A DNA stretch of 64,000 bases. Source: Styela clava (lineage: Eukaryota). The stretch covers positions 23,188,001-23,252,000 of the forward strand of contig NC_135250.1 of assembly GCF_964204865.1 (NCBI RefSeq), read 5' to 3'. This document shows, piece by piece, positions 4,943 to 62,845 of the stretch (position 1 is the stretch's first letter; each line of letters starts with the position of its first letter). The notes under the pieces were generated by a model. It ran no database searches. It saw only the letters and a list, made by a program, of their open reading frames with translations, and had not been told where the DNA came from. The position numbers were made by a program, and so were the translations under genes.

Positions 4943-6574
4943 ATGGAAGAAAAAATCAATACAGATTCTAAAGAACATGCTTTTGAAATTTTACAACAAT
5001 TAAATGAATATCGTAAAACTCGACGTCATTGTGATTTCATGATCAAAGCTGGATCTGAGGAACTTCCTGTTCATAGGAATATTGTGTCGGCAAGTTCCGA
5101 TTATTTTAAAGCAATGTTATCTCATGAAAATGTTGAAACAAAATCTGGTGTCGTTGTAATAAAGGAATTTGATGAAGTTTGTGTTAAAAAATGTGTTGAT
5201 TTCATTTACACTGGGGATGCTTATGTTGCCAAAGAAAAACGTGAAACACTCATGGGTGTCGCTCACATGATGCAGCTGCAAAGACTTTGTGATAGTATCG
5301 CAATTTTTCTGGAAGATGATCTTGATCCTAGATCGTTTTTTCAAACTAAAAAAATTGCGAATAGATACAACTGTGAACAACTTGAGGAAAAATGCAATCA
5401 ATTCGCATTGCAGCGTTTTATAGAAATTGCCCAGTCAGATGAGTTTATGGATCTTGATGAAAAATTTATTTCATTTCTGATGGAATCAAATGAAACAAAA
5501 GCAAAGGAAGAAGGGAAATGTAAGATGTTGTTAGCATGGACCAAACATGATATTGATGAAAGAAAGGAATGTTTTCTTAGTTTGGTGATGAAATTTCAGT
5601 TGACAAAAATGACTTTGTCATATAGAAGATTTCTTGTTGAAAATGAACCATTGTTATTTGAATCTATGCAGTCTATCCAGTCACTGACTTTGTCAATATT
5701 AGACAGTCATGGGGATATCAGCTCAAAAGATTTTAATTTAACAAAGAATAAACAGCTTGTTGTTTTTGATCAAACTTCTCAAAGAATGCATTCTATTGAT
5801 GTTATTGATAAAACATGGACTCCAATGCAAACCATAGATCAAGCAATTATAAAGAATTTATATTCTGCTGTAATGATGGAACCTTACATTTATGTGATTT
5901 GTACAAATAAATTATTTTATAGACTTGAATATGCTGAATCAAATGCAAAGTGGGAACAAATGGCAAATACAAATCTTCAGTATGCTTGTGTAGTTGCACT
6001 TGATGGTTTTGTTTATGGTATTGAGTATGGAGGGCGCCCAAACATTATGGAAAGATATGATCCATCAAATAATAGATGGACCAGACTAACAAACAAATCA
6101 TTGATTCTATATGGAGAATCTTTGGTGGCTGCTGATGGAAAGGTGTTTTGTATTGCAGGACATTCTGATCAACAACATCGAGCAACAAACCAAGTTGAGA
6201 TTTATGATCCTGTCACATCAACTTGGTCAATGGATAATAGATCATTGAATGAAGCAAGATATCGTGCTTCTGCAACTGTCACAGAGGAAGGAATATATGT
6301 TATGGGAGGTTGTAATGTTAATGGAACATCAACTCTCACTACTGTTGAATTTCGTTCATCTGTAACTAAAACCTGGATGATGTTGAAACCAATGAAAAAT
6401 GCAAGATTTAACTTCAGTAGTTGTGTGATTGATGGGAAAGTTTATGTCATTGGTGGAAATGGAAATTCTGCAAATATAGAGGAATATGATCCCGAAATAA
6501 AAGAATGGAAAATCATTGAAACAATACAAGGAAAAAATATTTTTCCAAGAGCAACAGTTGCAATATCTATATAA
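4943..6574 (+). CDS. Kelch-like protein (BTB-BACK-Kelch), copy K1, intact, 543 aa
   Basis: BTB motif HCDFMIKAG..LPVHRNIVSASSDYFKAM, CVDFIYTG, BACK region, Kelch repeats (VYVIGG..IEEYDP..W). Uninterrupted ORF; splice acceptor tttttctattgtttaag ~65 nt upstream of the ATG. Confidence 0.95.
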   Translation: MEEKINTDSKEHAFEILQQLNEYRKTRRHCDFMIKAGSEELPVHRNIVSASSDYFKAMLSHENVETKSGVVVIKEFDEVCVKKCVDFIYTGDAYVAKEKRETLMGVAHMMQLQRLCDSIAIFLEDDLDPRSFFQTKKIANRYNCEQLEEKCNQFALQRFIEIAQSDEFMDLDEKFISFLMESNETKAKEEGKCKMLLAWTKHDIDERKECFLSLVMKFQLTKMTLSYRRFLVENEPLLFESMQSIQSLTLSILDSHGDISSKDFNLTKNKQLVVFDQTSQRMHSIDVIDKTWTPMQTIDQAIIKNLYSAVMMEPYIYVICTNKLFYRLEYAESNAKWEQMANTNLQYACVVALDGFVYGIEYGGRPNIMERYDPSNNRWTRLTNKSLILYGESLVAADGKVFCIAGHSDQQHRATNQVEIYDPVTSTWSMDNRSLNEARYRASATVTEEGIYVMGGCNVNGTSTLTTVEFRSSVTKTWMMLKPMKNARFNFSSCVIDGKVYVIGGNGNSANIEEYDPEIKEWKIIETIQGKNIFPRATVAISI

Positions 6575-8993
6575 CATTGAAAGCTCATATTCCTGGACAT
6601 ACATGGCTCTCATATGCTTATTAAAAAATTCCTGTCAACATTTCTAATTTTTTTCTAAATTTTTATCATAAAATGATGAGGGCTAGAAACCTAATTTTCG
6701 TGCATCATAATACTCAGCTAAATAATTTAAATTTATCAAACATTTATTTATTTATCTATCTTATGTTCTAGTATTAAGTTATAGTTAGCTTAAGAATGAA
6801 TGTATGATTTAATATCAAGTTTATTGAATTTTTTCATACATTTATCTAACACTATTGATAATTTGACAGCCTGATGCTAAACATTACTTGATTTTATTAA
6901 GAAGTTGTTATTCGAATCTTATTAACGGTTTCTTATTTTCCCTAATTTATTATATTATTGAACTGTTAATGATCAAGATTTTAATTTGGTATTCTTCGAC
7001 ATTTTCTATTTTTTCATTATTTCATTCAATTTTGTGACATGCCACAATGGGACGTTGACCAATTTCAATTTTTATTTATGAATCATGGTTTAATAATTTG
7101 AAATTCTTTTATTCACAATGCCTAAATTGTTTTGAAAAATTTCATTTGATCTTAGTTTAACACAACAATTCAAGTTTTTCAATTGTTGCTGAGAATGGGT
7201 TAATATTAAATAATCATTTGCTTTAGTGATAATCACTGTATTTTTTTGAAATATTAATTTTGTTTCCACTGCTTTTCTGATATAATCAATTACGGTACCT
7301 AATATGCTCTTTTTTAAAATAGGTTTATTAATATCTATGCTTTTTATTCATGAGATAACTGTTCTATAGATTCGACATTATGAATCGTCATATTCAGGCT
7401 AGTTGCGATAAATCTATTATGACATGGCCCCCGTTGTACAAATAAAAGAAAATACAAAACTTTTGGGTTTAGGAGGAGTAGTGTTTATTCAAACATGCCT
7501 TAGCCATGACCTTCTGCTGCTCACTGTTGTCCAATGCATTATTGGTATTTTGTATCTTTTTGAGATGAGGCTCATTTCATACCATCATCTGTATAACGTC
7601 ATAACAAACTTGTTGTGGCCTTCTAGGCTGAGAACAATTATTCAACTTCTGATATTTCTATTCTGAAAATGATGATGATTTTGAGAAATTTTCATTTTCA
7701 AGAATTTCTTGGCAACTAATGAGCCATGAAATATTATTAATATTTATTGATTTCAATTTCTGATTAACAGACAATAAGTTCTGTAATAAAAGAATGGTTG
7801 AATATGGTTTTATTGAATATTCTTGAAAATTTTATTATTGTAGTATATTCATATTGACTAATTCACTGAACTTGATAAAATATACTGTATCAGTGAAATT
7901 GTCATTGTTATTGCTTTATGTACCTATATATAAGGTACTCGAAGGAAATATAAATTTTCATTTTGATGCTCGTAGTTAATATTCTGACAAATTCTTACTG
8001 GTATTATTTATGCAATTTTTCACAGCTGTAATTTGCAATATTAATATCATAATTAGATCAGCTGAAAAAGAAATTAAATATTTTCTGATGGTCGCGAAGT
8101 TCCTGCTTGTCTTCATAACATGCTTGATTTATCACTCGGCAATTTCCCAAAAGATTGTTGAAGATGATTTGATGCCTACTTTTGATAAAGATCTACACAG
8201 ACAACACATGTCATTATTGTTTGGCAAAAAGTGGAATTGATATCAGGCTGTGAAGTTGGCAGTTTAATAAACTCATTTTGATATTGGCTAAAAACCACTA
8301 TTTTAAATGTCCTCGAGTTGGATTCAAAATATATTTTTAGTTTAAAGTTTTATAAAAAGTTTTTCATACCTAGAACACCAGTAGATTCTGGAATTGTGAG
8401 AAAGTTTAAAAAGTGGAGTAGTTTTTTATCTTGATGTCGTCGCACACAAAAACTGAATACCAAAAAGCCAACAGAATTTTTAAAATAAGTGAAAGTCATA
8501 GACTTTTAGCAAAAAATACAATCTTTACCCAATGGAAATTTTAAAACAATTCCTCCAGTAGGTAATGAGGAAAGATATTTTTTCACAACAACAACAACAT
8601 AATAACAAAACGATCCATATGTACACTTCATATCCAATTAGAATCTAGAAGATCGGAAAATTATATTTTAATTAATATTTTTGATGATCTGTCATTGTCG
8701 AGCAATCGTGATCACATTGGATGGTATCCAAGAGTCACTCAATCCAACTCCAGATAGTTAGGTTATTCCCCGTTTCACGGACAACAGGCAGGAAGGTGTG
8801 TTGTGGGAAATACAACACGGTGCATTTTGTTTCGACATTCTGGACATACCGGTATAAGTTTATTTTTATTCACCAATGAACCAGGTATATGTGTGAATGC
8901 AATATTGAAGAGACTTCATGATGTCATTAATTTTTGGGGTCAGCGCGAAACACCGCAAAACAGAGGGAAACAGCGCATAACAGAGGAAAATAG

Positions 8994-11477: not shown

Positions 11478-11616
11478 AGTTGATTGTTTCCAACCGGTAT
11501 TAAATTCAACAGATACAAATGCAAAAAACATGCGAAAGAGTGAAGAATAGAGAGTTGATTGTTTCCAACCGGTAATATATTCAACAGATACAAATGCAAA
11601 AAACATGCGAAAGAGT
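11478..11616. repeat. Local tandem duplication of ~65-75 bp, unique to the K2 unit
   Basis: agttgattgtttccaaccggta...catgcgaaagagt occurs twice; paralogous units have one copy. Confidence 0.85.
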
Positions 11617-12394
11617 AAAGAATATAATTTTACTGGCAGATTGGGAAGAGAAGTCGCGGGGAGATTTGATGGTGGGCCTGTTATCCAACTAAACCTAATT
11701 GAAATTATGATCATCTGTAGTGGGCTGGACATTGGGAGACTGGAGAAAAAAGAGGATAAAGATCAGGTTCAGACAGGCTAATGACGGAATGAATTCCATT
11801 AAACATTAGTTGTTTAACATGCCCATATGGAGTATGATATCAGTACTCAAATATGAAATAACAGAATCAGAATGAAACATATACTATCATGAGCTAGCAT
11901 TTGGATAGGCGCATTATACTGCAATATGTATGAATAAATAGATAATAAAACTATGTTGGAGTGTCAGTTCAGGTTTTTAGGCTTCGAAACATCTCGAGAA
12001 CAAACCAAATTAAACTATTATTATTACATGATACCGGTACTTGCATTGTACGTTCCACAAGAGAATTATATTTTCAGACATATGGACTTGATAGGCGTAT
12101 TTGATGTTCTTGGTACAGCAACGTTTATCTGTTCTGTTGTCAATTCAACAGTTGGATGAACAATTTTTAAGTTTTTCTGTTTTGCTCAGTTCAAGCAATT
12201 CTGGTATATTTAAGTTGTACTTGGTGATGTAAACTTTTTTTTTTTAATATAAAGATTTATTTTTGATTGACTGTAATGTCTAATTAATTATCGTATTTTT
12301 AAATTAATTATTTTTTTCTATTGTTTAAGGTCTTTTCAATAATAGTAGTAGTATCATAAAATTATTTATAAAATCAAACCAAGTCATCTCAAAA

Positions 12395-14023
12395 ATGGAA
12401 GAAAAAATCAATACAGATTCTAAAGAACATGCTGTTGAAATTTTACAACAATTAAATGAATATCGTAAAACTGGTCGTCATTGTGATTTCATGATCAAAG
12501 CTGGATCTGAGGAACTTCCTGTTCATAAGAATATTGTGTCGGCAAGTTCCGATTATTTTAAAGCAATGTTATCTCATGAAAATGTTGAAACAAAATCTGG
12601 TGTCGTTGAAATAAAGGAAATTGATGAAGTTTGTGTTAAAAAATGTGTTGATTTCATTTACACTGGGGATGCTTATGTTGCCAAAGAAAAACGTGAAACA
12701 CTCATGGGTGTCGCTCACATGATGCAGCTGCAAAGACTTTGTGATAGTATCGCAATTTTTCTGGAAGATGATCTTGATCCTAGATCGTTTTTTCAAACTA
12801 AAAATATTGCGAATAGGTACAACTGTAAACAACTTGAGGAAAAATGCAATCAATTTGCATTGCAACGTTTCGAAGAAATTGCCGAGTCTGATGAGTTTAT
12901 GGATCTTGATGAAAAATTTATTTCATTTCTGATGGAATCAAAGGAAACAAAAGCAAAGATAGAAGTGAAATGTAAGATGTTGTTGGCATGGACCAAGCAT
13001 GATATTGATGAAAGAAAAGAATGTTTTCTTGGTTTGGTGATGAAATTTCAGTTGATAAAAATGAGTTTGTCATATAGAAAATTTCTTGTTGAAAATGAAC
13101 CACTGATATTTGAATCTGCAAAATCTCTTCAGTTATTGACTTTGTCAGTTTTTAACAGTCATCATGGATATATCAGTTCAAAAGATGTCAATTTAACAGA
13201 GAATAAACAGCTTGTTGTTTTTGACAAAACTTCCCAAAGAATGCATTCTCATGATGTTGATGATAAAACATGGACACCAATGCAAACCATAGATCAAGCA
13301 ATTATACAGAATAATTTATATTCTGCTGTAGTGATGGAATCTTACATTTCTGTAATTTGTGAAAATGGATTGTTTTATAGACTTGAATATGCTGAATCAA
13401 ATGCAAAGTGGGAACAAATGACAAATACTAATCTGAAGTGTGCATATGCAGTTGCACTTGATGGTTTTGTTTATGGTATTGAGCATCAGAATTACTCAAA
13501 CATGGAAAGATACGATCCATCAAATAATAGTTGGACCAGACTAACAAACAAATCATTGATTCTAGCATATGAATCTTTGGTGGCTGCTGATGGAAAGGTG
13601 TTTTGTATTGCTGGATTGAATCGACAAGGTCGAGCAACAAACCAAGTTGAGATTTATGATCCTGTCACATCAACTTGGTCAATGGATAGTAGATCATTGA
13701 ATGCAGCAAGATATTCTGCTTCTGCAACTGCTACAGAGGAAGTAATATATATTATGAGAGGTTATGATGATGGAAATACAATTTTCAATACTGTTGAATT
13801 TCGTTCATCTGTAACTAAAACCTGGATGATGTTGAAACCAATGAAAACTGCAAGAGAAGAGTTCAGTAGTTGTGTGATTGATGAGAAAGTTTATGTCATA
13901 GGTGGAAATCAAAATTCTGCAAATATAGAAGAATATGATCCTGAAACAAAAGAATGGAAAATTATTGAAACCATTCAAGGAAAAAATGTAACTCCACTGG
14001 CTACTGTTGCATTATTTATGTAA
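12395..14023 (+). CDS. Kelch-like protein, copy K2, intact, 542 aa
   Basis: Paralog of K1 with the same domain order; one Kelch GG motif reads RG (IYIMRG). Confidence 0.95.
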   Translation: MEEKINTDSKEHAVEILQQLNEYRKTGRHCDFMIKAGSEELPVHKNIVSASSDYFKAMLSHENVETKSGVVEIKEIDEVCVKKCVDFIYTGDAYVAKEKRETLMGVAHMMQLQRLCDSIAIFLEDDLDPRSFFQTKNIANRYNCKQLEEKCNQFALQRFEEIAESDEFMDLDEKFISFLMESKETKAKIEVKCKMLLAWTKHDIDERKECFLGLVMKFQLIKMSLSYRKFLVENEPLIFESAKSLQLLTLSVFNSHHGYISSKDVNLTENKQLVVFDKTSQRMHSHDVDDKTWTPMQTIDQAIIQNNLYSAVVMESYISVICENGLFYRLEYAESNAKWEQMTNTNLKCAYAVALDGFVYGIEHQNYSNMERYDPSNNSWTRLTNKSLILAYESLVAADGKVFCIAGLNRQGRATNQVEIYDPVTSTWSMDSRSLNAARYSASATATEEVIYIMRGYDDGNTIFNTVEFRSSVTKTWMMLKPMKTAREEFSSCVIDEKVYVIGGNQNSANIEEYDPETKEWKIIETIQGKNVTPLATVALFM

Positions 14024-14439
14024 CATTGACTGTTCTTATCAGTTGTTATACCTTTGTGGCATCATTTATTCCTATTATTCATCAACTAAAATTGAGTAGT
14101 AGTAAAAATAAACCTCTGTTGTTGATTTGATCATGAAAGTGAATGAATAACCAAATTTCTATTTCAGCTGCATTTCACCAGTTATCGAGCATAACCATGG
14201 CCAAGAAATTTGACTTCGAAGAGTTGATTTAAATTCATTATGCTTAAAGTGGTATCTATCTAATTTTCCATTGAATTTTTTTTACCGAATAGTTCACTAT
14301 TTCGAATACAATCAAAATTATTATTTTCGAATATGAAATTTCGAATACATGCAAAAATAAATTTAAGTGAAAAATCATATTTTAGGGCATCAAGGAATCT
14401 GCATACAATAAACAATGGAATAACTGTTATATACAACCT

Positions 14440-14850
14440 GTCTATTTACCAGACATTTTATGTCCACCGATTGCCTGATATTTTTGAGTAGTATTGCTTT
14501 TCATATTTCAGTAGGGCGAAAATACGAATCAAAAATTAATAATAATCGGGCAGTTTACTACACATTTTATGTCCGCAGATTGCCACTGTTTTTTAAAGTA
14601 TAGTAATTCCTTCTGTTTTCCCGTAAGTACGAAACTTCAAATCAAAAATTAATTATAATCGGGCAGTTTTCCACACATTTTATGTCCGCAGACTGCCCCG
14701 TATTTTACAATAGTAATGCTTTTATTTTTTCGCAAGTAGGAAAATGAGAATCAAAGATTAGGTATAATCGGGCAGTTCAACACACATTTTATGTCCCCAG
14801 ATTGCCGTGATATTTTAATATACAATAGCAATGCTTTTATTTTTTCGTAA
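14440..14850. repeat. Degenerate ~110-bp tandem repeat (3-4 units); duplicated at ~37785-38200
   Basis: AATCGGGCAGTT..CACATTTTATGTCCGCAGATTGCC recurs at ~14543, ~14657 and ~14766. Confidence 0.8.
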
Positions 14851-15120
14851 GTCGACGCAACCACGGTTTATGTTAAACAGAATTAAATTAATACGGCAAA
14901 GCCTTGTAATTGCTGGTATCTAAATATTTTGCTCAACAGAAAATCATCCTAGTAAAAAAGTGATACTTTTAACTATCTTTATCAAAATCGGTTGTCAAAA
15001 AGTGGATAAAAAGTATAAACTCTATTTCCTAATAACTCCTAATGACTAATTTATTGGGTATTGTACCAATTGTGGCTTTGAATAATTTCAAATTTTCGAC
15101 GTGAAGGAAATAACTGTATA

Positions 15121-15429
15121 AACTAGAATATCGGTTAGAAACCTAAGACTTATCGATCGAAGGTTAGGGGATCCCCCAAAACAGTGGTCTTACTCCATAG
15201 TGACACTGTGTGTCCCATCACTAATTAATTAATAACTCGTTAATTATAAGACATAATCCATCCAAAATCAATAGGCTTCTGATCCTAGATATGATGAATG
15301 CACATGCAAAATTTGGAGCAGATTCAACCTTTGTTTACGTGAGATATCGCGTGCATCTAACACACATAGATACACACAAACAGACATGCAAATACCTATC
15401 AACATACTTACCGATCTTAAGATCGATAG
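15121..15429 (+). mobile_element. Helentron-associated (HINE/DINE-like) element; a 5' fragment lies on the minus strand at 50433-50496
   Basis: Absent from the paralog at ~38450; internal ACAC/AGAC microsatellite; 3' hairpin CGATCTTAAGATCG. Confidence 0.55.
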
Positions 15430-16330
15430 CAACAGTATGAAGCGCACACTCACACAGAAGATCACCAACAAATTAAGTGCCGATCCTACTTCATCGTGAT
15501 TACTATACGTTTCAAAGCGTGGAAAATCATTTCAAGATTTCACTTAGAAGCGAAACACCTCGCTAACGGCGAAAAGTGGCTACTATTCGGAATTATTAGA
15601 AAATCAGCCAAAAAGGTATTCGAATACTTTGATATTCGAATGTTTTCGAATATTCAATTCATTTTGGACAACCCTGTCCTATTTCATTTCTACATAGCAT
15701 TTATTTTAACTGTCATTATTTGATTCTTGGTGTTCATGGTGTGTTATCTAGAGTTATGATCGTAATTTTTTATTTTGAACCTATCAGATTATTTCTTTAC
15801 TCAATTCTGAAATTTTGTGCCACAGATAGTGAGGTTTGTGTCAGCAGCGGTAACTCCCACTTTATTTTATTGCTTATGTGCATTAGCTTTTGATAAAGTC
15901 TTCTTTAGGTGATTATGAATATCTAAGAATAAAATAGGTAAAATAAAGTAGGCAATAATTGCAACCTGTTTTTATTATGTGTTTTTGATAACTGTAACTG
16001 TTCAATTTGTAATTTTTTTTATTTCTACTGCTTATGATAAAGATACATCAGTTTAAAATATCCAACATATATATATATTCTTGTTATGTCTGCTAAGATT
16101 AATAAATTTAAAAGCACAAGGTGTTAAAAATTGTTGAAGTTTGGTTGCTAAAATGTTTAGAATAAACAAGAATTACAATTTTTCATTTTACTCGAATTTA
16201 ATCTGTGTTATATAAGTTTGCCTTCTGATTTTGAAGTATTTTACCTTACAACTCCCTATAATATTATCAATTTAATTTTTTTCTCACAGATAACAAATGG
16301 TATATTTTTGATAACATAGTTATTATCATC

Positions 16331-17288
16331 ATGAGATGAGCTGAAAATGAAATCAACAATTCCTTACAAATGGCTTCATCGAATTTTGATATTCAAGAAA
16401 CTTTTAAAACTTTAACTCAAGATATTGAAACAAAACCTGTGGTGTTAATTCACTCGGAAATATTTTTCAAAAAAAGATATTTTTATCAACAAAACACGAT
16501 GAGACGATTCCTGTGACTGGATGAAGCAATGTTCCAACTTATAAATAGAATACAAATACATGGAGTGCAAGTTGAAGGACCAGATATGGTGGCTCTTGGA
16601 GATTTTCACTCAGATCTCATGTATTATCCTCAAAGATTAACCACAGAACCACATTCTGTGTTGTAAGCAACGATTCTGGTTCTATTGGACCGGACAAGAA
16701 GAAGGATAATCAAAATCTGAATTATGCCTTGAAGACGTTCTGTGATATTTTTGAGTTACCATTACCCAAACTTGATATCGTTTCAAAAAAATCACCTGGA
16801 CATGGCAGTGATATAGCAGATTATGAATTAGATGAAAATGGAAAAATTAGTTTGTCACCAAGTGGCCGTTTTCAGCTTCAAAACAAATTGAAAAAACTCC
16901 CAATTTTGCCAAATGGAGATGCTTATCTTCGTCCTATTTGTAGTTTTGAAAATGCTTTTTCGGTTCGTTTCTTACACAAACTTTCATCAAAATTCAATGG
17001 CAAATACCAACATAAAATTGGTGAATTATGCAAAAAAAATGATATCTTGGGAAAAGTCTGTAGAATATTATTTGTACAACCGACGAATTCCCTGCACTGA
17101 AACATGGTTTTCATCCTAAGCCTCATCTATCTTTGAGGTTCATTGCTCATTACAGAAATATATTCTACATTTTCATGTTATATGCTCTGTAGTTATTTTT
17201 TAGGTTCAATTTTGTATATGCATGTATTTACATTGTTTTTCTACTTGTCATCATAATATTCTTCAGAGCTTTGTTCAGTAAAGATTGA
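16331..17288 (+). pseudogene. SMPD4: Sphingomyelin phosphodiesterase 4-like pseudogene, internally deleted, copy 1
   Basis: DYELDENGKISLSPSGRFQLQN..LRPICSFENAF.VRFLHKLSSKFN..LSLRF plus a C-terminal hydrophobic tail resemble the SMPD4 C-terminus; several stops and frameshifts. Confidence 0.75.
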
Positions 17289-17392
17289 TATTTTCCCTTT
17301 GATATGCATTTCCCTCCCTCCAGGTTCAATAGTTGACAAAATATATAAGACCGTTGCATTTGCTGAATCTTTTAATTTGCATATAAGAATAA

Positions 17393-17733
17393 TAGGATGG
17401 GATTTACATACTTATCCCGGGGGAGAGGAAAGCCGATAAGACGGCTTATCCATATGGCGAACCACGGCCTCTCGTCTGGTTACCATTCCAAGTCGGGTAT
17501 GGAATTAGTTATACTGTATTATTTATTTTCGGAAGCATGGACTTGGTGGTGGAGGAAGCCGTAACCGACCAGCGGTTACATGAACCACCCAACGACGGCG
17601 AGGAGTCCAGCAATCCTCTCGCACATAACCCTCCCTGCATGGGATTCGAACCTGCGAACCCACGCAGAGTAATTAGAGGTGCGGTGGCGAGCGTATTCCT
17701 AACGCTTAGTCCGTTGAGCCACACCGCCGCGCC
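17393..17733 (-). mobile_element. tRNA-derived SINE
   Basis: Minus strand has A-box TGGCTCAACGG, B-box GGTTCGAATCC and a TCCTA-like tail. Absent from the paralogous site at ~40485; short AATAA-like duplication. Confidence 0.88.
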
Positions 17734-19929
17734 ATAATAATCAACTAAAGCTGTGGTGTGGAGTCTGGAAATTTTACACATTTCTTCAAACTCTTTAATG
17801 AATTAAGAAAAAACTATAAATGTTTTAATATGCATACTTTATTTACCGGTAAGTGTTGAGTATGCTAACATGATTTCTGGTTTCCTGGGAAAGTTCCGAC
17901 CTTGATTATCTGTTTTGAAAGTCTGAAATTTTGACTCCGAGGAATTTGAAGTGAACACCTTGAATCCATTATTAATAGACACATAGCAAACTCAGACAAC
18001 ACACCCCTAGTTTTGAGTTCAGTTTTTTTGATTGTGGGAATAGTAAGAGTTTGATCAACCACGTTTCTGTGTCATCTTGCTACCCATAATACATCTCTTA
18101 GGACAATAAGCTACTCCTGTTTGACAATGAACAGTTTAGTCACATAAATATGTTGTGAGCTTGTGAATGGATTTCTAAACAATTTATGTTGAGTTATCAG
18201 TATAGTTTGCTGACCTTTCATCGAAATCATTTTCTGTTGGTAAATACATGATTACTGCCTCATACTGCCAAGATTTTGTGCAGATTTAACATTCTAGAAA
18301 TGATTTTCTAAAGTCATAGATCAGTCATATCTTCTTTTATATTGTTTGTATTTTCATGATCAATATTGTTGGTTTATAATGTTTTTATATAAATTTTGTG
18401 TTTAGATAAAGACTGATAATCAATGGTGTTTAGCAGTTATTGAGAGAATCACAAGTGAAATACCCCTGCCTTTCGCCATATAGGTAGCACAGCACATGTA
18501 AACAATACAAGGTTGAAGCAGATTTAATAATTTAATAATTATTCAACATAACCCTGTGTCAAAATGCCATATCTATACAACTTCAACCACACTGCAAGTT
18601 GTTCCCCCTTGTTGTTAATAGTAGAGGATATGGTATTGTGGTTTGATTAGACAGTTTGCTTTGTTTGTGTCAGCATTTCCATTGGATCACATGTATTTAT
18701 TATATCAAGACAGAACATTACTTATCTCTTCTAATGGCAAAATAAAAATTGTTCCAAATCTAACCATTTTCTATATTACATGACCACCACCAATGGTTTT
18801 TGTTGATTATAATTATACATTTAGATACATAATATTTTCTTAAACCAAATTTTTTTAGGTGCAAATTCATATGTTAATAATTACAAAACATGTAAACTCC
18901 TCCAAGTTTTCTAAAATTTCTGTAAAACGTCAAATTGCTAATAAATGGCATGTCATATCGGGTACCGGCATATGTGTTCTTTGCAAGTGGCAATATATCA
19001 CATGTTATGTTTTGTATATAAGTTACCTAAGTAATTTTTTTTGCAATGTCATCTGGTTGTTCTGTAAGCTGTATTTTTATTGTACAAGCTCATTGCACTA
19101 TTTTATATCGTTTGAATTTTTTGTTGGATCTTTGCGATTTTCAAATTGCACTGAAACAACATCAAAATTCTTTGGAACGAAAAAAATAATATTTTCGGGT
19201 ATCTCTCTATATGTATAGGCAGAACCTATTGATATTATTTATACGGTACCTTTTATCTGTTCTGCTGACAATTCTGCAATAGGTTAAACAAAGAATAAGT
19301 TTCTGGTAAGTCTGGTATATTTCTGATGGCCTGGATCATACAGCCATACTTGGTGATTTTACGATACAAACTTCTGATAGCGAAATGTGGTTCATTATAT
19401 TTTAGTTTGGATATTGATACATTAACATGTTCAATAAGGCAGTTAACAGTAACTGGAATTTTGAAAACATTCACAGTAGCACAGTAGCAGTATGGTGGTA
19501 AAACATAGAAATACCGGTATATTAAAATTAGTAAATGTTCATTTTTGTTCAGTGATTTCTTGACCGAAGAAATATGCATGGCCTATCTTTCATACTGATA
19601 TTTTATCTACAAACTCCATAACTGAGAGTTGTAAGGTTATGTACTGTCACATCTTGACATTTATGTGACACAAATTAAGCAGTCAAAAGCTTCGCCATAG
19701 TGGTTGTGTACTTATTGCATTTCTTCTCGTTAGAGTTTAATTTTTTTGTTGTAATCATTGTTTTATGAAGCAATTAACCTAAATGAGTCCTTCCTTTTTC
19801 TTCCCAGAGGTTTATATGTGATGGACCGTAAAGTCTTTAGTTTAATTATTGTTTCTCTTTTTAAGGTATTATTATTATTAGTGGTATAATCATAAGCAGT
19901 GCTTTAAATTATCAGACGAAGTCTCAGAA

Positions 19930-21558
19930 ATGGAAGAAAAAATCAATACAGATTCTAAAGAACATGCTGTTGAAATTTTACAACAATTAAATGAATATCG
20001 TAAAACTGGACGTCATTGTGATTTCATGATCAAAGCTGGATCTGAGGAACTTCCTGTTCATAAGAATATTGTGTCTGCAAGTTCCGATTATTTTAAAGCA
20101 ATGTTATCTCATGAAAATGTGGAAACAAATTCTGGTGTCGTTGAAATAAAGGAATTTGATGAAGTTTGTGTTAAAAAATGTGTTGATTTCATTTACACTG
20201 GGGATGCTTATGTTGCCGAAGAAAAACGTGAAACACTCATGGGTGTCGCTCACATGATGCAGCTGCAAAGACTTTGTGATAGTATCGCAATTTTTCTGGA
20301 AGATGATCTTGATCCTAGATCGTTTTTTCAAACTAAAAAAATTGCAAATAGGTACAACTGTAAACAACTTGAGGAAAAATGCAATCAATTTGCATTGAAA
20401 CGTTTTAAAGAAATTGCCCAGTCTGATGAGTTTATGGATCTTGATGAAAAATTTATTTCATTTCTGATGGAATCAAAGGAAACAAAAGCAAAGGAAGAAG
20501 GGAAATGTAAGATGTTGTTGGCATGGACCAAACATGATATTGATGTGAGAAAAGAATGTTTTCTTGGTTTGGTGATGAAATTTCAGTTGATAAAAATGAC
20601 TTTGTCATATAGGAGATTCCTTGTTGAAAATGAACCATTGATAATTGGATCTGGAAAATATTTACAGTCATTGACTTTATCAATTTTAGACAGTACTGGG
20701 AATGTCAGTTCGAAAGATTTTAATTTCACAGAGAATAAACAGCTTGTTGTTTTTGATCAAACTTCTCGAAGAATACATTCTCATGATGTTGATGATAAAA
20801 CATGGACACCAATGCAAACCATAGATCAAGTAATCATACAGAATACAGTATGTTCTGCTGTAGTGATGGAATCTTACATTTATGTGATTTGTAAAAATGG
20901 ACCGTTTTATAGACTTGAATATGCTGAATCAAATGCAAAGTGGGAACAAATGACAAATACAAATCTTTATGGTACATGTGCAGTTGCACTTGATGGTTTC
21001 GTTTATGGTATTGAGTATCATAAATACTCGAACATTATGGAAAGATATGATCCATCAAATAATATATGGACCAGACTAACAAACAAATCATTGATTCTAG
21101 CTTGGGAATCTTTGGTGGCTGCTGATGGAAAGGTGTTTTGTATCACAGGAACGAATCAACAAGATCGAGTAACAAACCAAATTGAGATTTTTGATCCTGT
21201 CACATCAACTTGGTCAATGGATAATAGATCATTGAATGAAGCAAGATATCAAGCTTCTGCAACTGCTACAGAGGAAGGAATATATGTTATGGGAGGTAAA
21301 AATGTTGATGGAAAATCTCTCACTACTGTTGAATTTCGTTCATCTGTAACTAAAACCTGGATGATGTTGAAACCAATGAAAAATGCAAGACAATATTTCA
21401 GTAGTTGTGTGATTGATGAAAAAGTTTATGTCATTGGGGGAAATGGAAATCCTGCAAATATAGAGGAATATGATCCAGAAACAAAAGAATGGAAAATCAC
21501 TGAAACAATACAAGGAAAAAATATTTTTCCATTGGCAAGTTTTGCAATAAATATATAA
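19930..21558 (+). CDS. Kelch-like protein, copy K3, intact, 542 aa
   Basis: Paralog of K1; upstream flank differs from K1/K2/K4/K6/K7. Confidence 0.95.
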   Translation: MEEKINTDSKEHAVEILQQLNEYRKTGRHCDFMIKAGSEELPVHKNIVSASSDYFKAMLSHENVETNSGVVEIKEFDEVCVKKCVDFIYTGDAYVAEEKRETLMGVAHMMQLQRLCDSIAIFLEDDLDPRSFFQTKKIANRYNCKQLEEKCNQFALKRFKEIAQSDEFMDLDEKFISFLMESKETKAKEEGKCKMLLAWTKHDIDVRKECFLGLVMKFQLIKMTLSYRRFLVENEPLIIGSGKYLQSLTLSILDSTGNVSSKDFNFTENKQLVVFDQTSRRIHSHDVDDKTWTPMQTIDQVIIQNTVCSAVVMESYIYVICKNGPFYRLEYAESNAKWEQMTNTNLYGTCAVALDGFVYGIEYHKYSNIMERYDPSNNIWTRLTNKSLILAWESLVAADGKVFCITGTNQQDRVTNQIEIFDPVTSTWSMDNRSLNEARYQASATATEEGIYVMGGKNVDGKSLTTVEFRSSVTKTWMMLKPMKNARQYFSSCVIDEKVYVIGGNGNPANIEEYDPETKEWKITETIQGKNIFPLASFAINI

Positions 21559-22048
21559 CATCAATTACTATTTTATTCGTACAAATATGGCTCTCATAAT
21601 CTTATTGAATATACCTATCAATTTTCCTGATTTAATTTGTTTGCAGAATTATGGAAACTTGTCATTTGTCAATCATTTGTGTGTTGATATTTAGATTGAA
21701 TAATGTGTTTGACAAAAAGTTTTATTTGATAATTTTTCTTCTATACATTTAGCTCAAGAATGAATTTACAGAATGTTTGAAGATATAGCTGAATAATTTC
21801 TCTTTACAGATAGCCAATATCAATATTGATAATTCATACCTATTTTATTTGGAAGTGACAAGTGAAAACTTATTTCATATTAGTAGTGTTGATTTTGTAT
21901 ATATTTTTTTTTCTATCATTCCATTTAATATGGTCAACAATTTAATCTCTAATTCCTGAAAATGTATCATTTTTCAATATTTTATTCAATTTTGTGTTAT
22001 GTCAGATTACAGGAGCTTTCCCCGTAATAATTTTTTATGGGTTGTTAT

Positions 22049-22644: not shown

Positions 22645-22863
22645 ATTGTTATCATATCTCTCTCATTAACTCACATTAATTATTTATGATGGATCCTATC
22701 TGATTTTAGTTTCATACAATAATTCAAGTTTTTGATCTTAATGATCAGGTGGGGGTTATTTATATTAAATGCTCAATCGTTTGAAATCACTGTATTTTTT
22801 AATTATCATCATTTCACTGCTTATCGATATAACTAGTTCAAAGATATGTTAAATATTATTCAT

Positions 22864-39381: not shown

Positions 39382-40384
39382 ATGAGATCAGCTGGAAATG
39401 AAATCAACGATTCCTTACAAATGGCTTCATAGAATTTTGATATTCGAGAAACTTGTAAAAGTTTAACTCAAGTCATTGAAACCTGTGGTGTTAATTCACT
39501 TGGAAATATTTTTCAAAAAAAGATATCTTTATCAACAAAACATATAAATAGTGTGTGGTGAGAAGCGGAGTTTCTATGGCAGACTTTGGTATTGTGAGAC
39601 GATTCCTGTGACTGGATGGAGCAATGTTCCAACTTATAAATAGAATACAAATACATGGAGTGCAAGTTAAAGGACCCTATATGGTGGCTATTGGAGATTT
39701 TCACTCAAATCTCATGTATTAATCTCAAAGATTAACCACAGAACCACATTCTGTGTTAAAAACAACGATTCTGGTTCTATTGGACCGGACAAGAAAAAGA
39801 TTGAGCAAAATCTGAATTATGCCTTGAAAACTTTTTGGTATATTTTTGAGTTACCATTACCCAAACTTGATATCAATTCAAGAAGATCACCTGGACATGG
39901 CAGTGATATAGCAGATTAGGAATTAGATGAATATGGAAAAATGAGTTTGTCACCAACTGGCCGTTTTCAGCTTCAAAACAAATTGAAAAAATTCCCTATT
40001 TTGCCAAATGTATTTGCTGATCTTCGTCCTATTTGTAGTTTTGAAAATGCTTTTTTGGTTCGTTTCTTACACAAACTTTCATCAAAATTCAATGGCAAAT
40101 ACCAACATGAAATTGGAAAATTATGCAAGAAAAATGATATCTTGGGAAAAATCTGTGGAATATTATTTGAACAACCTGACGAATTCCCTGCACTGAAACA
40201 TGGTTTTCATCCTAAGCCTCATTTATCTTTGAGGTTCATGGCTCATTACAGAAATATATTCTACATTTTCATGTTATATGCTCTGTCGTTATTTTTCAAG
40301 TTCAGTTTTGTATATGCGTTGATTTACATTGTTTTTCTACTTGTCATCATAATATTCTTCAGAGCTTTGTTCAGTGAAGATTGA
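39382..40384 (+). pseudogene. SMPD4: Sphingomyelin phosphodiesterase 4-like pseudogene, internally deleted, copy 2
   Basis: N-terminal remnants (ETCKSLTQVIE, DFGIVRRFL.LDGAMFQLINRIQ) followed by the open C-terminal 147 aa at 39941-40384. Confidence 0.78.
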
Positions 40385-42837: not shown

Positions 42838-44450
42838 ATGGAAGAAAAAATCAATACAGATTCTAAAGAACATGCTGTTGAAATTTTACAACAATTAAAT
42901 GAATATCGTAAAACTGGACGTCATTGTGATTTCATGATCAAAGCTGGATCTGAGGAATTTCCTGTTCATAAGAATATTGTGTCTGCAAGTTCCGATTATT
43001 TTAAAGCAATGTTATCTCATGAAAATGTGGAAACAAATTCTGGTGTCGTTGAAATAAAGGAATTTGATGAAGTTTGTGTTAAAAAATGTGTTGATTTCAT
43101 TTACACTGGGGATGCTTATGTTGCCGAAGAAAAACGTGAAACACTCATGGGTGTCGCTCACATGATGCAGCTGCAAAGACTTTGTGATAGTATCGCAATT
43201 TTTCTGGAAGATGATCTTGATCCTAGATCGTTTTTTCAAACTAAAAAAATTGCAAATAGGTACAACTGTAAACAACTTGAGGAAAAATGCAATCAATTTG
43301 CATTGAAACGTTTTAAAGAAATTGCCCAGTCTGATGAGTTTATGGATCTTGATGAAAAATTTATTTCATTTCTGATGGAATCAAAGGAAACAAAAGCAAA
43401 GGAAGAAGGGAAATGTAAGATGTTGTTGGCATGGACCAAACATGATATTGATGTGAGAAAAGAATGTTTTCTTGGTTTGGTGATGAAATTTCAGTTGATA
43501 AAAATGACTTTGTCATATAGGAGATTCCTTGTTGAAAATGAACCATTGATAATTGGATCTGGAAAATATTTACAGTCATTGACTTTATCAATTTTAGACA
43601 GTACTGGGAATGTCAGTTCGAAAGATTTCAATTTCACAGAGAATAAACAGCTTGTTGTTTTTGATCAAACTTCTCGAAGAATACATTCTCATGATGTTGA
43701 TGATAAAACATGGACACCAATGCAAACCATAGATCAAGTAATCATACAGAATACAGTATGTTCTGCTGTAGTGATGGAATCTTACATTTATGTGATTTGT
43801 AAAAATGGACCGTTTTATAGACTTGAATATGCTGAATCAAATGCAAAGTGGGAACAAATGACAAATACAAATCTTTATGGTACATGTGCAGTTGCACTTG
43901 ATGGTTTCGTTTATGGTATTGAGTATCATAAATACTCGAACATTATGGAAAGATATGGACCAGACTAACAAACAAATCATTGATTCTAGCTTGGGAATCT
44001 TTGGTGGCTGCTGATGGAAAGGTGTTTTGTATCACAGGAACGAATCAACAAGATCGAGTAACAAACCAAATTGAGATTTATGATCCTGTCACATCAACTT
44101 GGTCAATGGATAATAGATCATTGAATGAAGCAAGATATCAAGCTTCTGCAACTGCTACAGAGGAAGGAATATATGTTATGGGAGGTTATGATAATAATAG
44201 AGGTTCAACTCTCACTACTGTTGAATTTCGTTCATCTGTAACTAAAACCTGGATGTTGTTGAAACCAATGAAAAATGCAAGATATAAGTTCAATAGTTGT
44301 GTGATTGGTGACAAGGTTTATGTCATTGGTGGAAATCGAGATCCTGCAAATATAGAGGAATATGATCCGGAAACAAAAGAATGGAAAATTATTGAAACAA
44401 TACAAGGAAAAAATATAATTTCATTGGCAACTGTTGCAATATCTATATAA
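42838..44450 (+). pseudogene. Kelch-like copy K5, frameshifted in the Kelch domain
   Basis: Nearly identical to K3 until ~44185. A 19-bp deletion between ATATG direct repeats at ~43957 splits it into ORFs 42838-43968 and 43980-44450. Confidence 0.9.
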
Positions 44451-45934
44451 CATTAATTACTCTTATACTTCACAAATATAGTTCTCATATTCTTCATGAA
44501 AAAAATACTTATCAGTCTTTCTACTGTACTCTCAAATTAATTTTTTTCATAATGATGAAACTTGTAAATTAATCATTTGTGTGGTAATATTTAGATTGAA
44601 TAAATTATTTAACCAAAAGGATTATTCGATTATTGCTTGATTAAGAACCAATCTACAGAATGTTTAAAGATATAGCTTGAATAAATTCTCTTTACAGATA
44701 GCCAATATCAATATTGATAATTCAATTATTTGGTTAGGTAATCATTACCTATTTCATTTGGAAGTGACAAGTGAAAATTATTTTCATATTGGTAGTGATG
44801 ATTTTTTTTTTTATATCATTTCATTTATCATGGTCAACAATTTAATCTCTAATTCTTGAAAATGTTTCATTCTTCAATATTTTATTCAATTTTGTGATGT
44901 CAGATTACAGGAGCTTACCCCATATTTTTTTTTATATACTCGATATGGTATGGGTTGTTATCATATCTCCCTCATTAACTCGCATTAATTGTTTATGATG
45001 TGGCCTATCTGATTTTAGTTTCATAATATAATTCAAGTTTTTCGTCTTTATGCTCCATCTTTATGGGGGTAATTTATATTAAATGCTCATTTCTTTGAAA
45101 TCACTGTATTTTTTAATTATTATCATTTCACTGCTTTTTTGATATAACTAGGTCAAAGATATGCATTTTTTAAATGTGTTTATTATTTATGCTTTTTATT
45201 CTTGAAGTGACTCATCAAAAAAATTGTGTTTTTGTAAATGAAATATTTAGGTTAGTGGCAATAAAGCTTTTATTACATGCCCCTGTTGCACAAATTGGGT
45301 TCTGTCCATCCAATATCAAATTTTTGCAAATCTATTATTACAAATAAAAGAAAATACAAAACTTTTAGGTTTAGGAGTAGTGTTCATTCAACCATGCCTT
45401 AGTAATGACCTCACTGCTGTCCAATGCATTATCAGTATTCTGTTATTTTGAGGTGAGGCTCATTTCATACCATCATCTGTATAACGTCATAACAGACTTG
45501 TTGTGGCCTTCTAGGCTAAGAACAATTATTCAACTTACGGTATAATATTCCTATTCTGAAAATGATGAGGAATTTTCGTGAATATCTTTGCAACCAATGA
45601 GGCATGAAATATTTTCATTTTTTATTGATTTCAATTCCTGATTAACAGACAATGAGTTCTGTAATTAAGGAAATATGATTTTATTGAATATTCTCAAAAA
45701 TTTTATTATTATTGTAGTATGTATATTCATATTGACTAATTCAATGAACTTGATAAAATATACTGTGTTAGTGAAATTGTCATTGTTATTGCGTTATGTA
45801 TAAAAGGGGCATCAGGGGCAATTCGCAATATTGATATCATAATTAGACCAGCTGAGAAAGAAATTAAATACTCTCTGATGGTAGCGAAGTTCCTGCCAGT
45901 CTTTATAACATGCTTGATTCGTTACTCGGCAATT

Positions 45935-52730: not shown

Positions 52731-54352
52731 ATGGAAGAAAAAATCAATACAGATTCTAAAGAACATGCTGTTGAAATTTTACAACAATTAAATGAATATC
52801 GTAAAACTGGGCGTCATTGTGATTTCATGATCAAAGCTGGATCTGAGGAACTTCCTGTTCATAAGAATATTGTGTCAAAGCAATGTTATCTCATGAAAAT
52901 GTGGAAACAAAATCTGGTGTCGTTGAAATAAAGGAATTTGAAGTTGAAGTTTGTGTTAAAAAATGTGTTGATTTCATTTACACTGGGGATGCTTATGTTG
53001 CCAAAGAAAAACGTGAAACACTCATGGGTGTCGCTCACATGATGCAGCTGCAAAGACTTTGTGATAGTATCGCAATTTTTCTGGAAGATGATCTCGATCC
53101 TAGATCGTTTTTTCAAACTAAAAAAATTGCGAATAGGTACAACTGTAAACAACTTGAGGAAAAATGCAATCAATTTGCATTGCAACGTTTCAAAGAAATT
53201 GCCCAGTCTGATGAGTTTATGGATCTTGATGAAAAATTTATTTCATTCCTGATCGAATCAAAGAAAACAAAAGCAAAGGAAGGAGGGAAATGTAAGATGT
53301 TGTTAGCATGGACCAAACATGATATTGATGAAAGAAAAGAATGTTTTCTTAGTTTGGTGATGAAATTTCAGTTGACGAAAATGACTCTGTCATATAGAAG
53401 ATTTCTCGTTGAAAATGAACCATTGATATTTGAATCTATGCAGTCTCTTCGTTCACTGACTTTATCAATACTGGACAGCCATCCTGAGAATATCAGTTCA
53501 AAAGATTTCGATTTAACAGAGAATGAACAGCTTGTTGTTTTTGATCAAACTTCTCAAAGAATGCATTGTCATGATATTGATGCTAAAACATGGACACCAA
53601 TGCAAACCATAGATCAAGCAATTATACAGAATACATTACATTCTGCTGTAGTGATTGAATCTTACATTTATGTGATTTGTAGAAATGGATCGTTTTATAG
53701 ACTTGAATATGCTGAATCAAATGCAAAGTGGGAACAAATGACAAATACAAATCTTCAGTGGGCATGCGTAGTTGCACTTGATGGTTTTGTTCATGGTATT
53801 GAATATCAGAATTACTCAAATGTTTTGGAAAGATATGATCCATCAAATAATAGATGGACCAGACTAACAAACAAATCATTGATTCTAGCTTTTGAATCTT
53901 TGGTGGCTGCTGATGGAAAGGTGTTTTGTATTGCAGGATATTCTAATCAGATAGGTCGAGCAACAAACCAAGTTGAGATTTATGATCCTGTCACATCAAC
54001 TTGGTCAATGGATAATGGATCATTGAATGAAGCAAGATATCAAGCTTCTGCAACTGCTACAGAGGAAGGAATATATGTTGTGGGAGGTTATGATAATAAT
54101 AGAGGTTCAACTCTCACTACTGTTGAATTTCGTTCATCTGTAACTAATACCTGGATGATGTTGAAACCAATGAAAAATGCAAGACAATTTTTCAGTAGTT
54201 GTGTGATTGATAAGAAGGTTTATGTCATTGGTGGAAATGGAAATCCTGCAAATATAGAGGAATATGATCCTGAAACAGAAGAATGGAGAATCATTGAAAC
54301 AATACAAGGAAAAGATAATTTTCCACGAGCAACTGTTGCACTATCTATATAA
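52731..54352 (+). pseudogene. Kelch-like copy K6, frameshifted in BTB
   Basis: 19-bp deletion (ggcaagttccgattatttt) at ~52876 relative to paralogs; ~0.75 kb of upstream flank also missing at ~52464. Confidence 0.9.
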
Positions 54353-61211: not shown

Positions 61212-62845
61212 ATGGAAGAAAAAATCAATACAGATTCTAAAGAACATGCTGTTGAAATTTTACAACAATTAAATGAATATCGTAAAACTGGACGTCATTG
61301 TGATTTCATGATCAAAGCTGGATCTGAGGAACTTCCTGTTCATAAGAATATTGTGTCGGCAAGTTCCGATTATTTTAAAGCAATGTTATCTCATGAAAAT
61401 GTTGAAACAAAATCTGGTGTCGTTGAAATAAAGGAATTTGATGAAGTTTGTGTTAAAAAATGTGTTGATTTCATTTACACTGGAAGTGCTTATGTTGCCA
61501 AAGAAAAACGTGAAACACTCATGGGTGTTGCTCACATGATGCAGCTGCAAAGACTTTGTGATAGTATCGCAATATTTCTGGAAGATGATCTTGATCCTAG
61601 ATCGTTTTTTCAAACTAAAAATATTGCGAATAGGTACAACTGTAAACAACTTGAGGAAAAATGCAATCAGTTTGCATTGCAACGTTTTGAAGAAATTGCC
61701 CAGTCTGATGAGTTTATGGATCTTGATGAAAAATTTATTTCATTTTTGATGGAATCGAAGGAAACAAAAGCAAGGGAAGAAGGGAAATGTAAGATTTGTT
61801 AGCATGGACCAAACATGATATTGATGAAAGAAAGGAATGTTTTCTTAGTTTGGTGATGAAATTCCAGTTGACAAAAATGACTTTGTCATATAGAAGATTT
61901 CTTGTTGAAAATGAGCCACTGTTATATGAATCTATGCAGTCAATTCGTTCAATGACTTTATCAATCTTGGACAGCAATGGGAATGCCGGTTCAAAAGATT
62001 TCAATTTAATTCAGAATCAACAGCTGGTTGTTTTTGATCAGACTTCCAAAAGAATGCATTGTCATGATGTTGATGATAAAACATGGACACCAATGCAAAC
62101 CATAGATCAAGCAATTATACAGAATACATTATATTCTGCTGTAGTGATGGAATCTTACATTTCTGTAATTTGTGAAAATGGATTGTTTTATAGACTTGAA
62201 TATGCTGAATCAAATGCAAAGTGGGAACAAATGACAAATCCAAATCTTCAGTATGCATGTGTAGTTGCACTAAATGGTTTTGTTTATGGTATTGAGTATC
62301 AGATTTACTCAAACATTATGGAAAGATATGATCCATCAAATAATAGATGGACCAGACTAACGAACAAATCATTGATTCTGGTCCATGAATCTTTGGTATC
62401 TGCAGATGAAAAGGTGTTTTGTATTGCAGGATATTCTAATCAGCAATGTCGAGCAACAAACCAAGTTGAGATTTATGATTCTGTCACATCAACTTGGTCA
62501 ATGGATAATAGATCATTGAATGAAGTAAGATATACTGCTTCTGCAACTGCTACAGATGAAGGAATATATGTTATGGGAGGTTATAATGTTAATGGGAGTA
62601 CAGTTCTGAATACTGCTGAATTTCGTTCATCTGTAACTAAAACCTGGACGATGTTGAAACCAATGAAAAATGCAAGGCAATGGTGCAGTAGTTGTGTGAT
62701 TGATGTCAAAGTTTATGTCATTGGTGGAAATGGAAATCCTGCAAATATAGAGGAATATGATCCAGAAACAAAAGAATGGAAAATCATTGAAACAATGCAA
62801 GGAAAAAATATAATTCCATTGGCAACTATTGCAATATCTATCTAA
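61212..62845 (+). pseudogene. Kelch-like copy K7, 1-bp frameshift in the BACK region (could be a sequencing error)
   Basis: aagatttgttagc versus aagatgttgttagc in paralogs at ~61796; otherwise full length with no stops. Confidence 0.8.

Follow-up and report, generated by a model that had tools for sequence, protein, structure and literature searches.

We analyzed a 64,000-nucleotide stretch of the Styela clava genome (C1:23,188,001-23,252,000 of a 377-Mb assembly, hereafter the window) that contains seven copies of a BTB-BACK-Kelch gene. These copies are part of what is probably a germline repertoire of putative CUL3-type receptors, in the form of a lineage-specific, tandem and intronless BTB-BACK-Kelch family whose members would differ in specificity. 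The BTB-BACK module of this family is kept near-invariant by purifying selection. About 20 positions are positively selected, nearly all of them in BC and DA loops of the Kelch propeller; in the KLHL and KEAP1 complexes that have been solved, these loops make up the face that binds substrate. Paralogs swap segments down to single or paired blades, and duplication, either of 7-9 kb units or of blocks with several genes, gives rise to new copies; about a third of the copies are now dead. An initial annotation of the window, made from its sequence alone, had described a tandem array with a constant scaffold and hypervariable propeller loops and had interpreted it as a diversifying ubiquitin-ligase recognition repertoire, possibly of an intracellular immune or anti-parasite kind. 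Our analysis confirmed the observation and partly supports the interpretation.

When the open reading frame (ORF) of the first copy, c1, was used in a tblastn search of the window, we recovered seven copies, all on the plus strand and 7-10 kb apart. Four of the seven (c1 to c4) are intact, single-exon genes of 542-543 amino acids (aa), and three (c5 to c7) are broken in frame; the ORF that remains in c6 is 489 aa long, starts at position 52883 and has lost most of the BTB domain. A genome search with c1 showed that the whole array spans 286 kb (C1:23,019,491-23,305,758) and consists of 22 intact genes (537-546 aa) and ~10 broken copies, which lie on one common strand and are 74-92% identical. 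The seven copies counted in the initial annotation were all found; what it had missed is that three of them are pseudogenes, that recombination among paralogs is extensive and that the array is ~5 times what the window shows. A word-based search of limited reach recovered the family, with its ~32 loci within 286 kb, from S. clava alone. We found no vertebrate KLHL orthologue in a protein search, in which all hits at 36% identity or above were from Styela clava or unnamed and the next named ones (e.g., Ciona KLHL12) were 24-27% identical. The names that NCBI gives to the copies (KLHL12, 17, 18, 20, 24, 25 and 38) are automatic and mutually inconsistent. The Styela cullin genes consist of many small exons.

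Pfam searches detected BTB, BACK and Kelch across the copies. A BTB/POZ domain (PF00651, residues 20-125, E-values of 3e-17 to 2e-20) is present in every copy that retains its N-terminus, and it is followed by a BACK domain (PF07707, residues 135-227, E ~1e-13) and by C-terminal Kelch repeats (PF01344, E down to 1e-31). We used AlphaFold2, with an alignment of 42 paralogs, to predict the structure of c1 (mean predicted local distance difference test score, pLDDT, of 88). This model predicts a BTB-BACK module that is helical, including the BACK region, followed by a short disordered linker (residues 257-269) and a propeller of 24 strands in six blades, the ring being closed by the C-terminal strand. 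Using Foldseek, full-length c1 was matched to KBTBD2, KLHL22 and KBTBD4 solved in CUL3 complexes, and the c1 propeller to KLHL12, KEAP1 and KLHL3 at template modeling (TM) scores of 0.81-0.85 (0.83-0.85 for KLHL12 and KEAP1; KLHL12: TM 0.83, root-mean-square deviation 2.7 Å). A homodimer prediction for two copies of BTB-BACK (residues 1-230) gave an ipSAE interface score of 0.70, compared with 0.01 for the best control; as BTB dimers are among the solved structures, the score of 0.70 may reflect the model's memory of solved complexes. The mark used for homodimers was passed by 21 of 30 solved homodimers and by none of 23 solved single chains, and in our homodimer runs contact agreement was at least 97% and the partner pLDDT at least 86. 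The residues at this predicted interface are invariant among the paralogs.

In the protein alignment, the first 230 residues are almost invariant, with only a few positions that differ, and the differences and in-frame insertions or deletions cluster at two sites in each blade, one preceding strand A and one following the GG turn. This is as described in the initial annotation, and the loop motifs listed there were all recovered as written (e.g., LIL-YG/AY/AW/TC/AF/VH-ESL, RY-R/S/Q/T-ASA, AR-FNF/EEF/QYF/YKF/QFF/QWC and the strings after GG). We assigned the Kelch residues to structural classes from the DSSP string of the model alone, before rates were inspected, and computed nonsynonymous (dN) and synonymous (dS) divergence by the Nei-Gojobori method (NG86) for all pairs of the 22 intact genes. 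The ratio dN/dS was 0.21 (interval 0.14-0.29) for BTB-BACK, 0.38 for the β-strands, 1.34 (0.87-2.23) for the BC loops, 0.68 for the DA loops and 0.62 for the AB and CD loops on the opposite face, where dN itself was very low (0.047). Within the gene, conservation is strongest in BTB and BACK, with the 3-box region included (dN/dS ratio, ω, of 0.1-0.3). A linker stretch (alignment columns 226-270; approximately c1 residues 226-268, window 5618-5746) has a dS of 0.70-0.83 among the 22 intact copies, which is 4-10 times that of the rest of the gene (0.04-0.25), with a dN/dS of ~0.2, as under purifying selection, and it falls into four or five discrete classes of sequence. One explanation is an old family in which conversion has homogenized the other parts of the gene; the other is exchange of this stretch with distant donors.

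The variable positions can be compared with the residues by which KEAP1 binds Nrf2. On the top face of the KEAP1 propeller these contacts are Ser363, Arg380, Asn382, Arg415, Arg483 and Ser508, and Tyr334, Tyr525 and Tyr572 are also required (PMC4629420). When c1 was aligned to the KEAP1-derived SAKe proteins, residues Y440/R441, F489/N490 and Y390/G391 fell on the first and second positions after the conserved Arg of the DA loop (Arg+1/+2), and C457 onward fell on the positions that follow GG. Within the Kelch motif we take the KEAP1 contacts to be the residues that immediately follow the conserved Arg of the DA loop and those at GG+1/+3/+6. No residue-level alignment to KEAP1 came out of a search of solved structures with the Kelch domain alone, and the mapping is based on the SAKe-design alignment, the Kelch motif, the KEAP1 numbering and the published contacts (PMC4629420).

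From this motif rule we defined, a priori, a set of 30 codons, namely the two residues past the conserved DA-loop Arg plus GG+1/+3/+6. The dN of this set was 0.356, compared with 0.072 in the rest of the Kelch domain, and none of 5000 random Kelch sets of equal size reached it, so that the clustering of differences at two places per blade is far beyond chance. Relative to the dS of the remaining propeller the dN of the set gave a ratio of 2.5 (1.7-3.7), and relative to the dS of the neighbors within ±3 codons (0.212) a ratio of 1.7. At the codons identified as selected (see below), dN was 0.76 and the dS of the neighbors within ±2 codons was 0.22. As conversion tracts cannot skip single codons, these comparisons with neighbors speak against mere homogenization of the scaffold.

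Codon site models (GY94/F3x4 likelihood) placed ω at ~5-8 for 4-13% of Kelch codons. On a single tree, M2a was favored over M1a (twice the log-likelihood difference, 2ΔlnL, of 313; ω2 = 6.3 at 3.8% of sites), and M8 was favored over M7 (2ΔlnL = 362), the comparison that the initial annotation had proposed, and over M8a (270). BC loops, DA loops and the extended blade-4 BC hairpin account for 18 of the 21 high-posterior sites. Others are residue 498 in an AB turn, the exception on an otherwise quiet opposite face, and residue 259 in the linker, and none are in BTB-BACK. The selected positions fall on the loops homologous to those with which KEAP1 contacts Nrf2. Among the 22 copies, codons 390 and 391 have 7 and 6 residue states, residue 407 has 11 and residue 441 has 8, and selection at residue 441 persisted without gap-adjacent columns.

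We divided the gene into five segments and found that each rejects the trees of all other segments and of the whole gene (approximately unbiased (AU) test, p < 0.01, with one comparison at 0.010); recombination among paralogs is pervasive. As the segment trees are mutually rejected, a selection test on a single tree is unsafe. With segment-specific trees, M2a was supported in the Kelch segments (p = 7e-7, 1e-12 and 1e-16), and BTB-BACK on its own segment tree gave no positive selection (ω2 = 1, no gain of M2a over M1a). Trees for individual blades over-fit and therefore make the test conservative; with these trees we obtained p = 9e-15 for blade 4, 4e-10 for blade 5 and ~0.02 for blades 2 and 3, and blades 1 and 6 were not significant. 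Removal of the 78 columns that lie no more than 2 positions from a gap left p-values of 1e-6, 5e-5 and 4e-6. In 25 simulations that used the blade-4 tree and the M1a model, the likelihood-ratio test (LRT) statistic stayed at or below 3.3, compared with the observed value of 64.6. Together, these analyses bear out the contrast between a constant BTB-BACK scaffold and diversifying propeller loops.

The exchange of segments can be followed in individual genes. Two genes of the array, L007 and L013, have no nucleotide differences in codons 1-230, 8 in codons 231-442 and 42 in codons 457-543, and the last two blades of L007 are nearest to those of a third gene, L010. In the window, the N-terminal ~420 aa of c5 are close to c3, and blades 5 and 6 of c5 resemble those of c6. 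These patterns indicate that blades move between paralogs and add combinatorial diversity to point substitutions.

As a comparison set for the array, we took 18 S. clava family members that come from a different public source (UniRef/nr) and are linked to no contig of this assembly. Two of the 18 had a counterpart of at least 98% identity in this genome, and the best match of the other 16 was 60-91%, mostly 87-91%. Searches of the whole genome with two of these proteins gave best matches of 90% and 88%. As a positive control, seven of eight of the assembly's own annotated proteins were recovered at 100%, the eighth being a spliced gene model. Blade by blade, the proteins of the other source were 80-97% identical to copies in this genome, with one match of 100%, which is comparable to the distance among those copies, and they are therefore not chimeras of them. 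Repertoires appear to differ between individuals, as judged from these protein sequences.

Contigs of public sequencing runs bear on whether c1 is expressed. X1 and X6, small assemblies that come from separate studies, cover the c1 coding region at a summed depth of 100-300 and its 3' flank weakly, and they have no contigs in the upstream spacer at 4200-4800, itself duplicated in the array; a large run, X10, covers the c1 region throughout, the spacer included. The pattern at c1 fits RNA over low-coverage DNA, and transcription, whose absence would have counted against the initial annotation, is likely, although this pattern is not proof and does not resolve paralogs. One X1 contig of 98 nt, at window 6063-6160, is identical to c1 save at 6110, 6111, 6113 and 6115. 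These four bases fall in codons 390-391 and change YG to AW, as in c3 and c5.

BTB-Kelch arrays also occur elsewhere in this genome. A first-pass genome-wide search gave 629 candidates, and we found further intronless tandem arrays on C17 (4.43-4.48 and 4.68-4.76 Mb), C10 (2.67-2.77 Mb), C18 (3.12-3.15 Mb) and C5 (7.387 Mb), whose members are 31-41% identical to c1 and 74-97% identical within one array. In the eight-gene array at 4.68-4.76 Mb on C17 (FB), the BC loops have the highest dN/dS (1.43), and M2a was supported in blades 5-6 (p = 0.003, with sites in BC loops) and in the N-terminal segment (p = 0.046). The older array at 4.43-4.48 Mb on C17 (FA) gave no significant M2a signal.

By homology to known family members, the BTB dimer would recruit CUL3-RBX1, and the top face of each propeller would bind a different degron or variants of one. 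With a dimer interface that is invariant, paralogs may also heterodimerize. The pattern of selection points to a fast-changing partner, which could be proteins of a virus, a parasite or a mobile element, or an equally variable host family. If this is correct, the array is a tractable candidate for a system of innate recognition inside cells, in the invertebrates most closely related to vertebrates.

Several findings weigh against a selected repertoire of ligase receptors. About a third of the copies are pseudogenes. When the BC loops and the DA loops are each taken as a whole class, the confidence interval of dN/dS includes 1, as it should where a class combines conserved with selected positions; it is a class of loop sites, and not the loops as such, that shows the excess over 1 anticipated in the initial annotation. 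The signals in the two older arrays on another chromosome, FA and FB, are weak. Our codon likelihood was self-written and is not PAML or HyPhy; it was checked by null simulation and on an IQ-TREE codon tree, where the branch-length scale was optimized to 0.9996. Site-model tests are inflated by recombination, and part of the exchange may take place inside blades. At the selected codons dS is raised (0.51, compared with 0.22 in their neighbors), which leaves room for a local mutational or conversion process; it may instead be a multiple-hit artefact of counting or reflect old lineages kept at these codons. The residue at the φ position of the CUL3-binding φ-x-E motif seems to be Asn (N63-V64-E65). 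Lastly, the transcription data are contigs from runs whose library type is not on record, in which expressed paralogs are indistinguishable.

One alternative places the variable partner inside the organism, as a co-expanding host family, a selfish element or a self/non-self system, so that the array would record internal genetic conflict and not infection. Gamete self-sterility and allorecognition are known in ascidians, and the repertoires differ strongly between two sources of one species, as at recognition loci. The several further BTB-Kelch arrays suggest a broad remodeling of targeting by cullin-3-RING ligases (CRL3), and the spacers of this array are filled with transposable elements. 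However, no signal peptide or membrane segment was visible in a domain scan of the window proteins, which makes direct recognition at the cell surface unlikely. We consider an endogenous partner of this kind rather unlikely, while giving it real weight.

A second explanation is neutral birth and death, in which the loops are simply unconstrained (ω ~1) and values of ω above 1 are an artefact of a scaffold homogenized by conversion, of deflated dS and of trees misled by recombination. Recombination is indeed pervasive, the whole-class loop intervals include 1, about a third of the copies have decayed and the linker dS of 0.7-0.8 hints at an age of the family greater than most of the gene would indicate. 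On the other hand, dN exceeds the dS of immediate neighbors both in the a-priori set (0.356 versus 0.212) and at the selected codons (0.76 versus 0.22), the M2a signal persists with blade-specific trees and without gap-adjacent columns, and data simulated under M1a never produced a comparable LRT statistic. Given these comparisons, we regard neutral evolution of the loops as improbable.

It is also conceivable that the proteins are not ligase adaptors, and that BTB-BACK only oligomerizes variable propellers that act as binders, scaffolds or decoys (cytoskeletal or sequestering) without recruiting CUL3. Some BTB-Kelch proteins have ligase-independent roles, and an Asn at the φ position would fit such a role. 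Yet BTB and BACK with its 3-box are the most conserved parts of these proteins, as expected for a conserved partner such as CUL3, and every one of the nearest structural matches at full length is a CRL3 adaptor whose structure was solved with CUL3, so we give this possibility little credence. A viral or retrocopy origin of the family finds no support beyond the missing introns.

Beyond the preferred reading of the array as a germline repertoire of putative CUL3-type receptors, we tentatively consider a stronger form of it, which on balance we think somewhat unlikely to hold in full. In this form, the Kelch propellers would be a germline-encoded, recombining recognition repertoire of dozens of putative CRL3 receptors that share an invariant BTB dimer module, may form heterodimers, carry shuffled and selected loops and blades, and have largely non-overlapping haplotypes. 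If true, the array could restrict viruses, parasites or mobile elements inside the cell, or act as a self/non-self determinant, and it would be a Kelch-based counterpart of the TRIM5/finTRIM and plant nucleotide-binding leucine-rich-repeat (NLR) clusters in the sister group of vertebrates.

The features of the window are listed in Table 1. Self-comparison of the window by blastn showed that the duplicated units take in spacers, with 86-95% nucleotide identity. These local identities are our only neutral guide, as multiple alignments of 5' and 3' flanks, tried as a neutral yardstick, gave K values of 0.55-1.2 with spacers broken up by insertions and were dropped. In several pairs of copies, similarity begins ~90-100 bp 5' of the ATG (window 4852-4942) and stops ~50-60 bp past the stop codon, and beyond this shared core the spacers of those pairs are different repeats. 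As similarity is limited to the gene and short flanks, the core looks like a transcribed unit plus a short promoter-proximal stretch. Elsewhere in the array, L012 (C1:23114495-23116114) and L015 (C1:23118548-23120161) lie 4 kb apart and are identical in their aligned codons, with no more than a small in-frame difference in length (542 and 540 aa), so that the pair stems either from a duplication of very recent date or from one made in the assembly.

Table 1. Genes, c1 loops, duplicated blocks and a retroelement in the window (position 1 is the first nucleotide of the window; residue numbers are those of c1).
Feature	Coordinates	Strand	Evidence or remark
c1, intact BTB-BACK-Kelch gene, 543 aa, one coding exon	4943..6574	+	ORF, Pfam, AlphaFold2, Foldseek
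c1 BTB-BACK, residues 1-230	4943-5632	+	
c1 Kelch propeller, residues 270-543	5750-6571	+	
c1 blade 2 BC loop, residues 321-324	5903..5914	+	residue 321 positively selected
c1 blade 3 BC loop, residues 362-368	6026..6046	+	363, 365 selected
c1 DA loop 3-to-4, codons 390-391 (YG of LIL-YG-ESL)	6110..6115	+	both selected
c1 blade 4 BC hairpin, residues 407-413	6161..6181	+	407, 409, 412, 413 selected
c1 DA loop 4-to-5, residues 440-441, right after conserved Arg439	6260..6265	+	441 selected
c1 blade 5 BC loop, residues 457-467, indel-rich	6311..6343	+	461-463, 465 selected
c1 DA loop 5-to-6, residues 489-490, right after conserved Arg488	6407..6412	+	both selected
c2, intact paralog, 542 aa	12395..14023	+	ORF, Pfam, tblastn, protein alignment
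c3, intact paralog, 542 aa	19930..21558	+	ORF, Pfam, tblastn, protein alignment
c4, intact paralog, 542 aa	35742..37370	+	ORF, Pfam, tblastn, protein alignment
c5, broken	42838..44450	+	frame shifted by 19-bp deletion after 43954 (blade 3)
c6, broken	52731..54352	+	BTB domain hit by 19-bp deletion after 52876
c7, broken	61212..62845	+	1-bp deletion after 61795 (BACK), outside any homopolymer
Two-gene block, c2 + c3 with spacers	11553..22038	+	self-blastn
Two-gene block, second copy (c4 + c5)	34883..44935	+	self-blastn; 90-94% nucleotide identity to first
Ty3/Gypsy-type retroelement between c3 and c4	29894..34497	-	ORFs of 1289 and 245 aa; Pfam

The Ty3/Gypsy-type element encodes reverse transcriptase, RNase H and an integrase zinc-binding domain, together with an N-terminal SAM-like domain (SAM_4, E 8e-7), and it is outside the BTB-Kelch system. 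At 22863-24076 on the minus strand, two overlapping ORFs, the downstream one with a zinc knuckle and a retroviral-type aspartyl protease, are a second, fragmentary gag-pro region of a long-terminal-repeat element. Two plus-strand ORFs, at 16729-17097 and 39941-40381, match the C-terminal end alone (660-810 of 818) of PF14724, a mitochondrial-associated sphingomyelin phosphodiesterase family. As one such fragment is found in each copy of the two-gene block, this gene fragment travels with the array unit. An annotated protein, P0027, fuses the PF14724 fragment with Kelch.

This array is real and probably represents a Kelch-based form of the adaptively diversifying cullin-adaptor repertoires that are known from other lineages, and it is apparently undescribed: neither a hypervariable KLHL array nor this Styela family was described in the literature that we searched. 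The nematode MATH-BTB (BATH) and F-box families were reportedly described by Thomas in 2006. Vertebrate KLHL and KBTBD proteins (KEAP1, KLHL12, KLHL3, KLHL22 and KBTBD2) share the BTB-BACK-Kelch architecture and fold with the Styela proteins, and the variable positions of the latter correspond to the DA- and BC-loop residues with which KEAP1 contacts its substrate. The vertebrate members are conserved genes under purifying selection, whereas the Styela family is intronless and hypervariable, with a best match outside the species of 24-27%. If our reading is correct, the array offers a natural library whose propellers, ~30 or more in each genome and still others across individuals, share a constant frame and differ at ~20 defined contact positions. 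Such a library would be useful for studies of degron recognition and for engineering binders or degraders.

Poxvirus BTB-Kelch proteins are likewise multi-copy, bind CUL3 and act in host-pathogen conflict (PMC3185573). They are, however, virus-encoded and redirect the host ligase, whereas the Styela genes form an array in a host chromosome among host repeats, for which we saw no sign of a viral origin. Teleost finTRIM and primate TRIM5-type proteins are also tandem E3 families with selection on target-binding loops and a constant recruiting module (PMC2657112). These are RING E3s with a B30.2/SPRY domain and function in antiviral recognition (PMC2657112), as opposed to putative CUL3 adaptors with Kelch propellers.

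The nematode MATH-BTB and F-box families and the MATH-BTB expansions of grasses also serve as comparison repertoires (PMC4091423, PMC8120010). Like the Styela family in our reading of it, they are cullin-RING adaptors in lineage-specific tandem arrays, with a conserved cullin module, a positively selected substrate domain, birth-and-death evolution and strong intraspecific diversity. The nematode and grass families have been proposed to target pathogen proteins. They differ in that recognition is by MATH, FTH or FBA domains, whereas the Styela family uses a six-bladed Kelch propeller, with blades exchanged, in a chordate (a tunicate). Adaptive cullin-adaptor repertoires are known with MATH, F-box-associated and SPRY domains, mostly from nematodes, plants and fish, and the Styela array, if our reading of it holds, would mean that the commonest CUL3 adaptor fold of animals can also be a hypervariable recognition scaffold.

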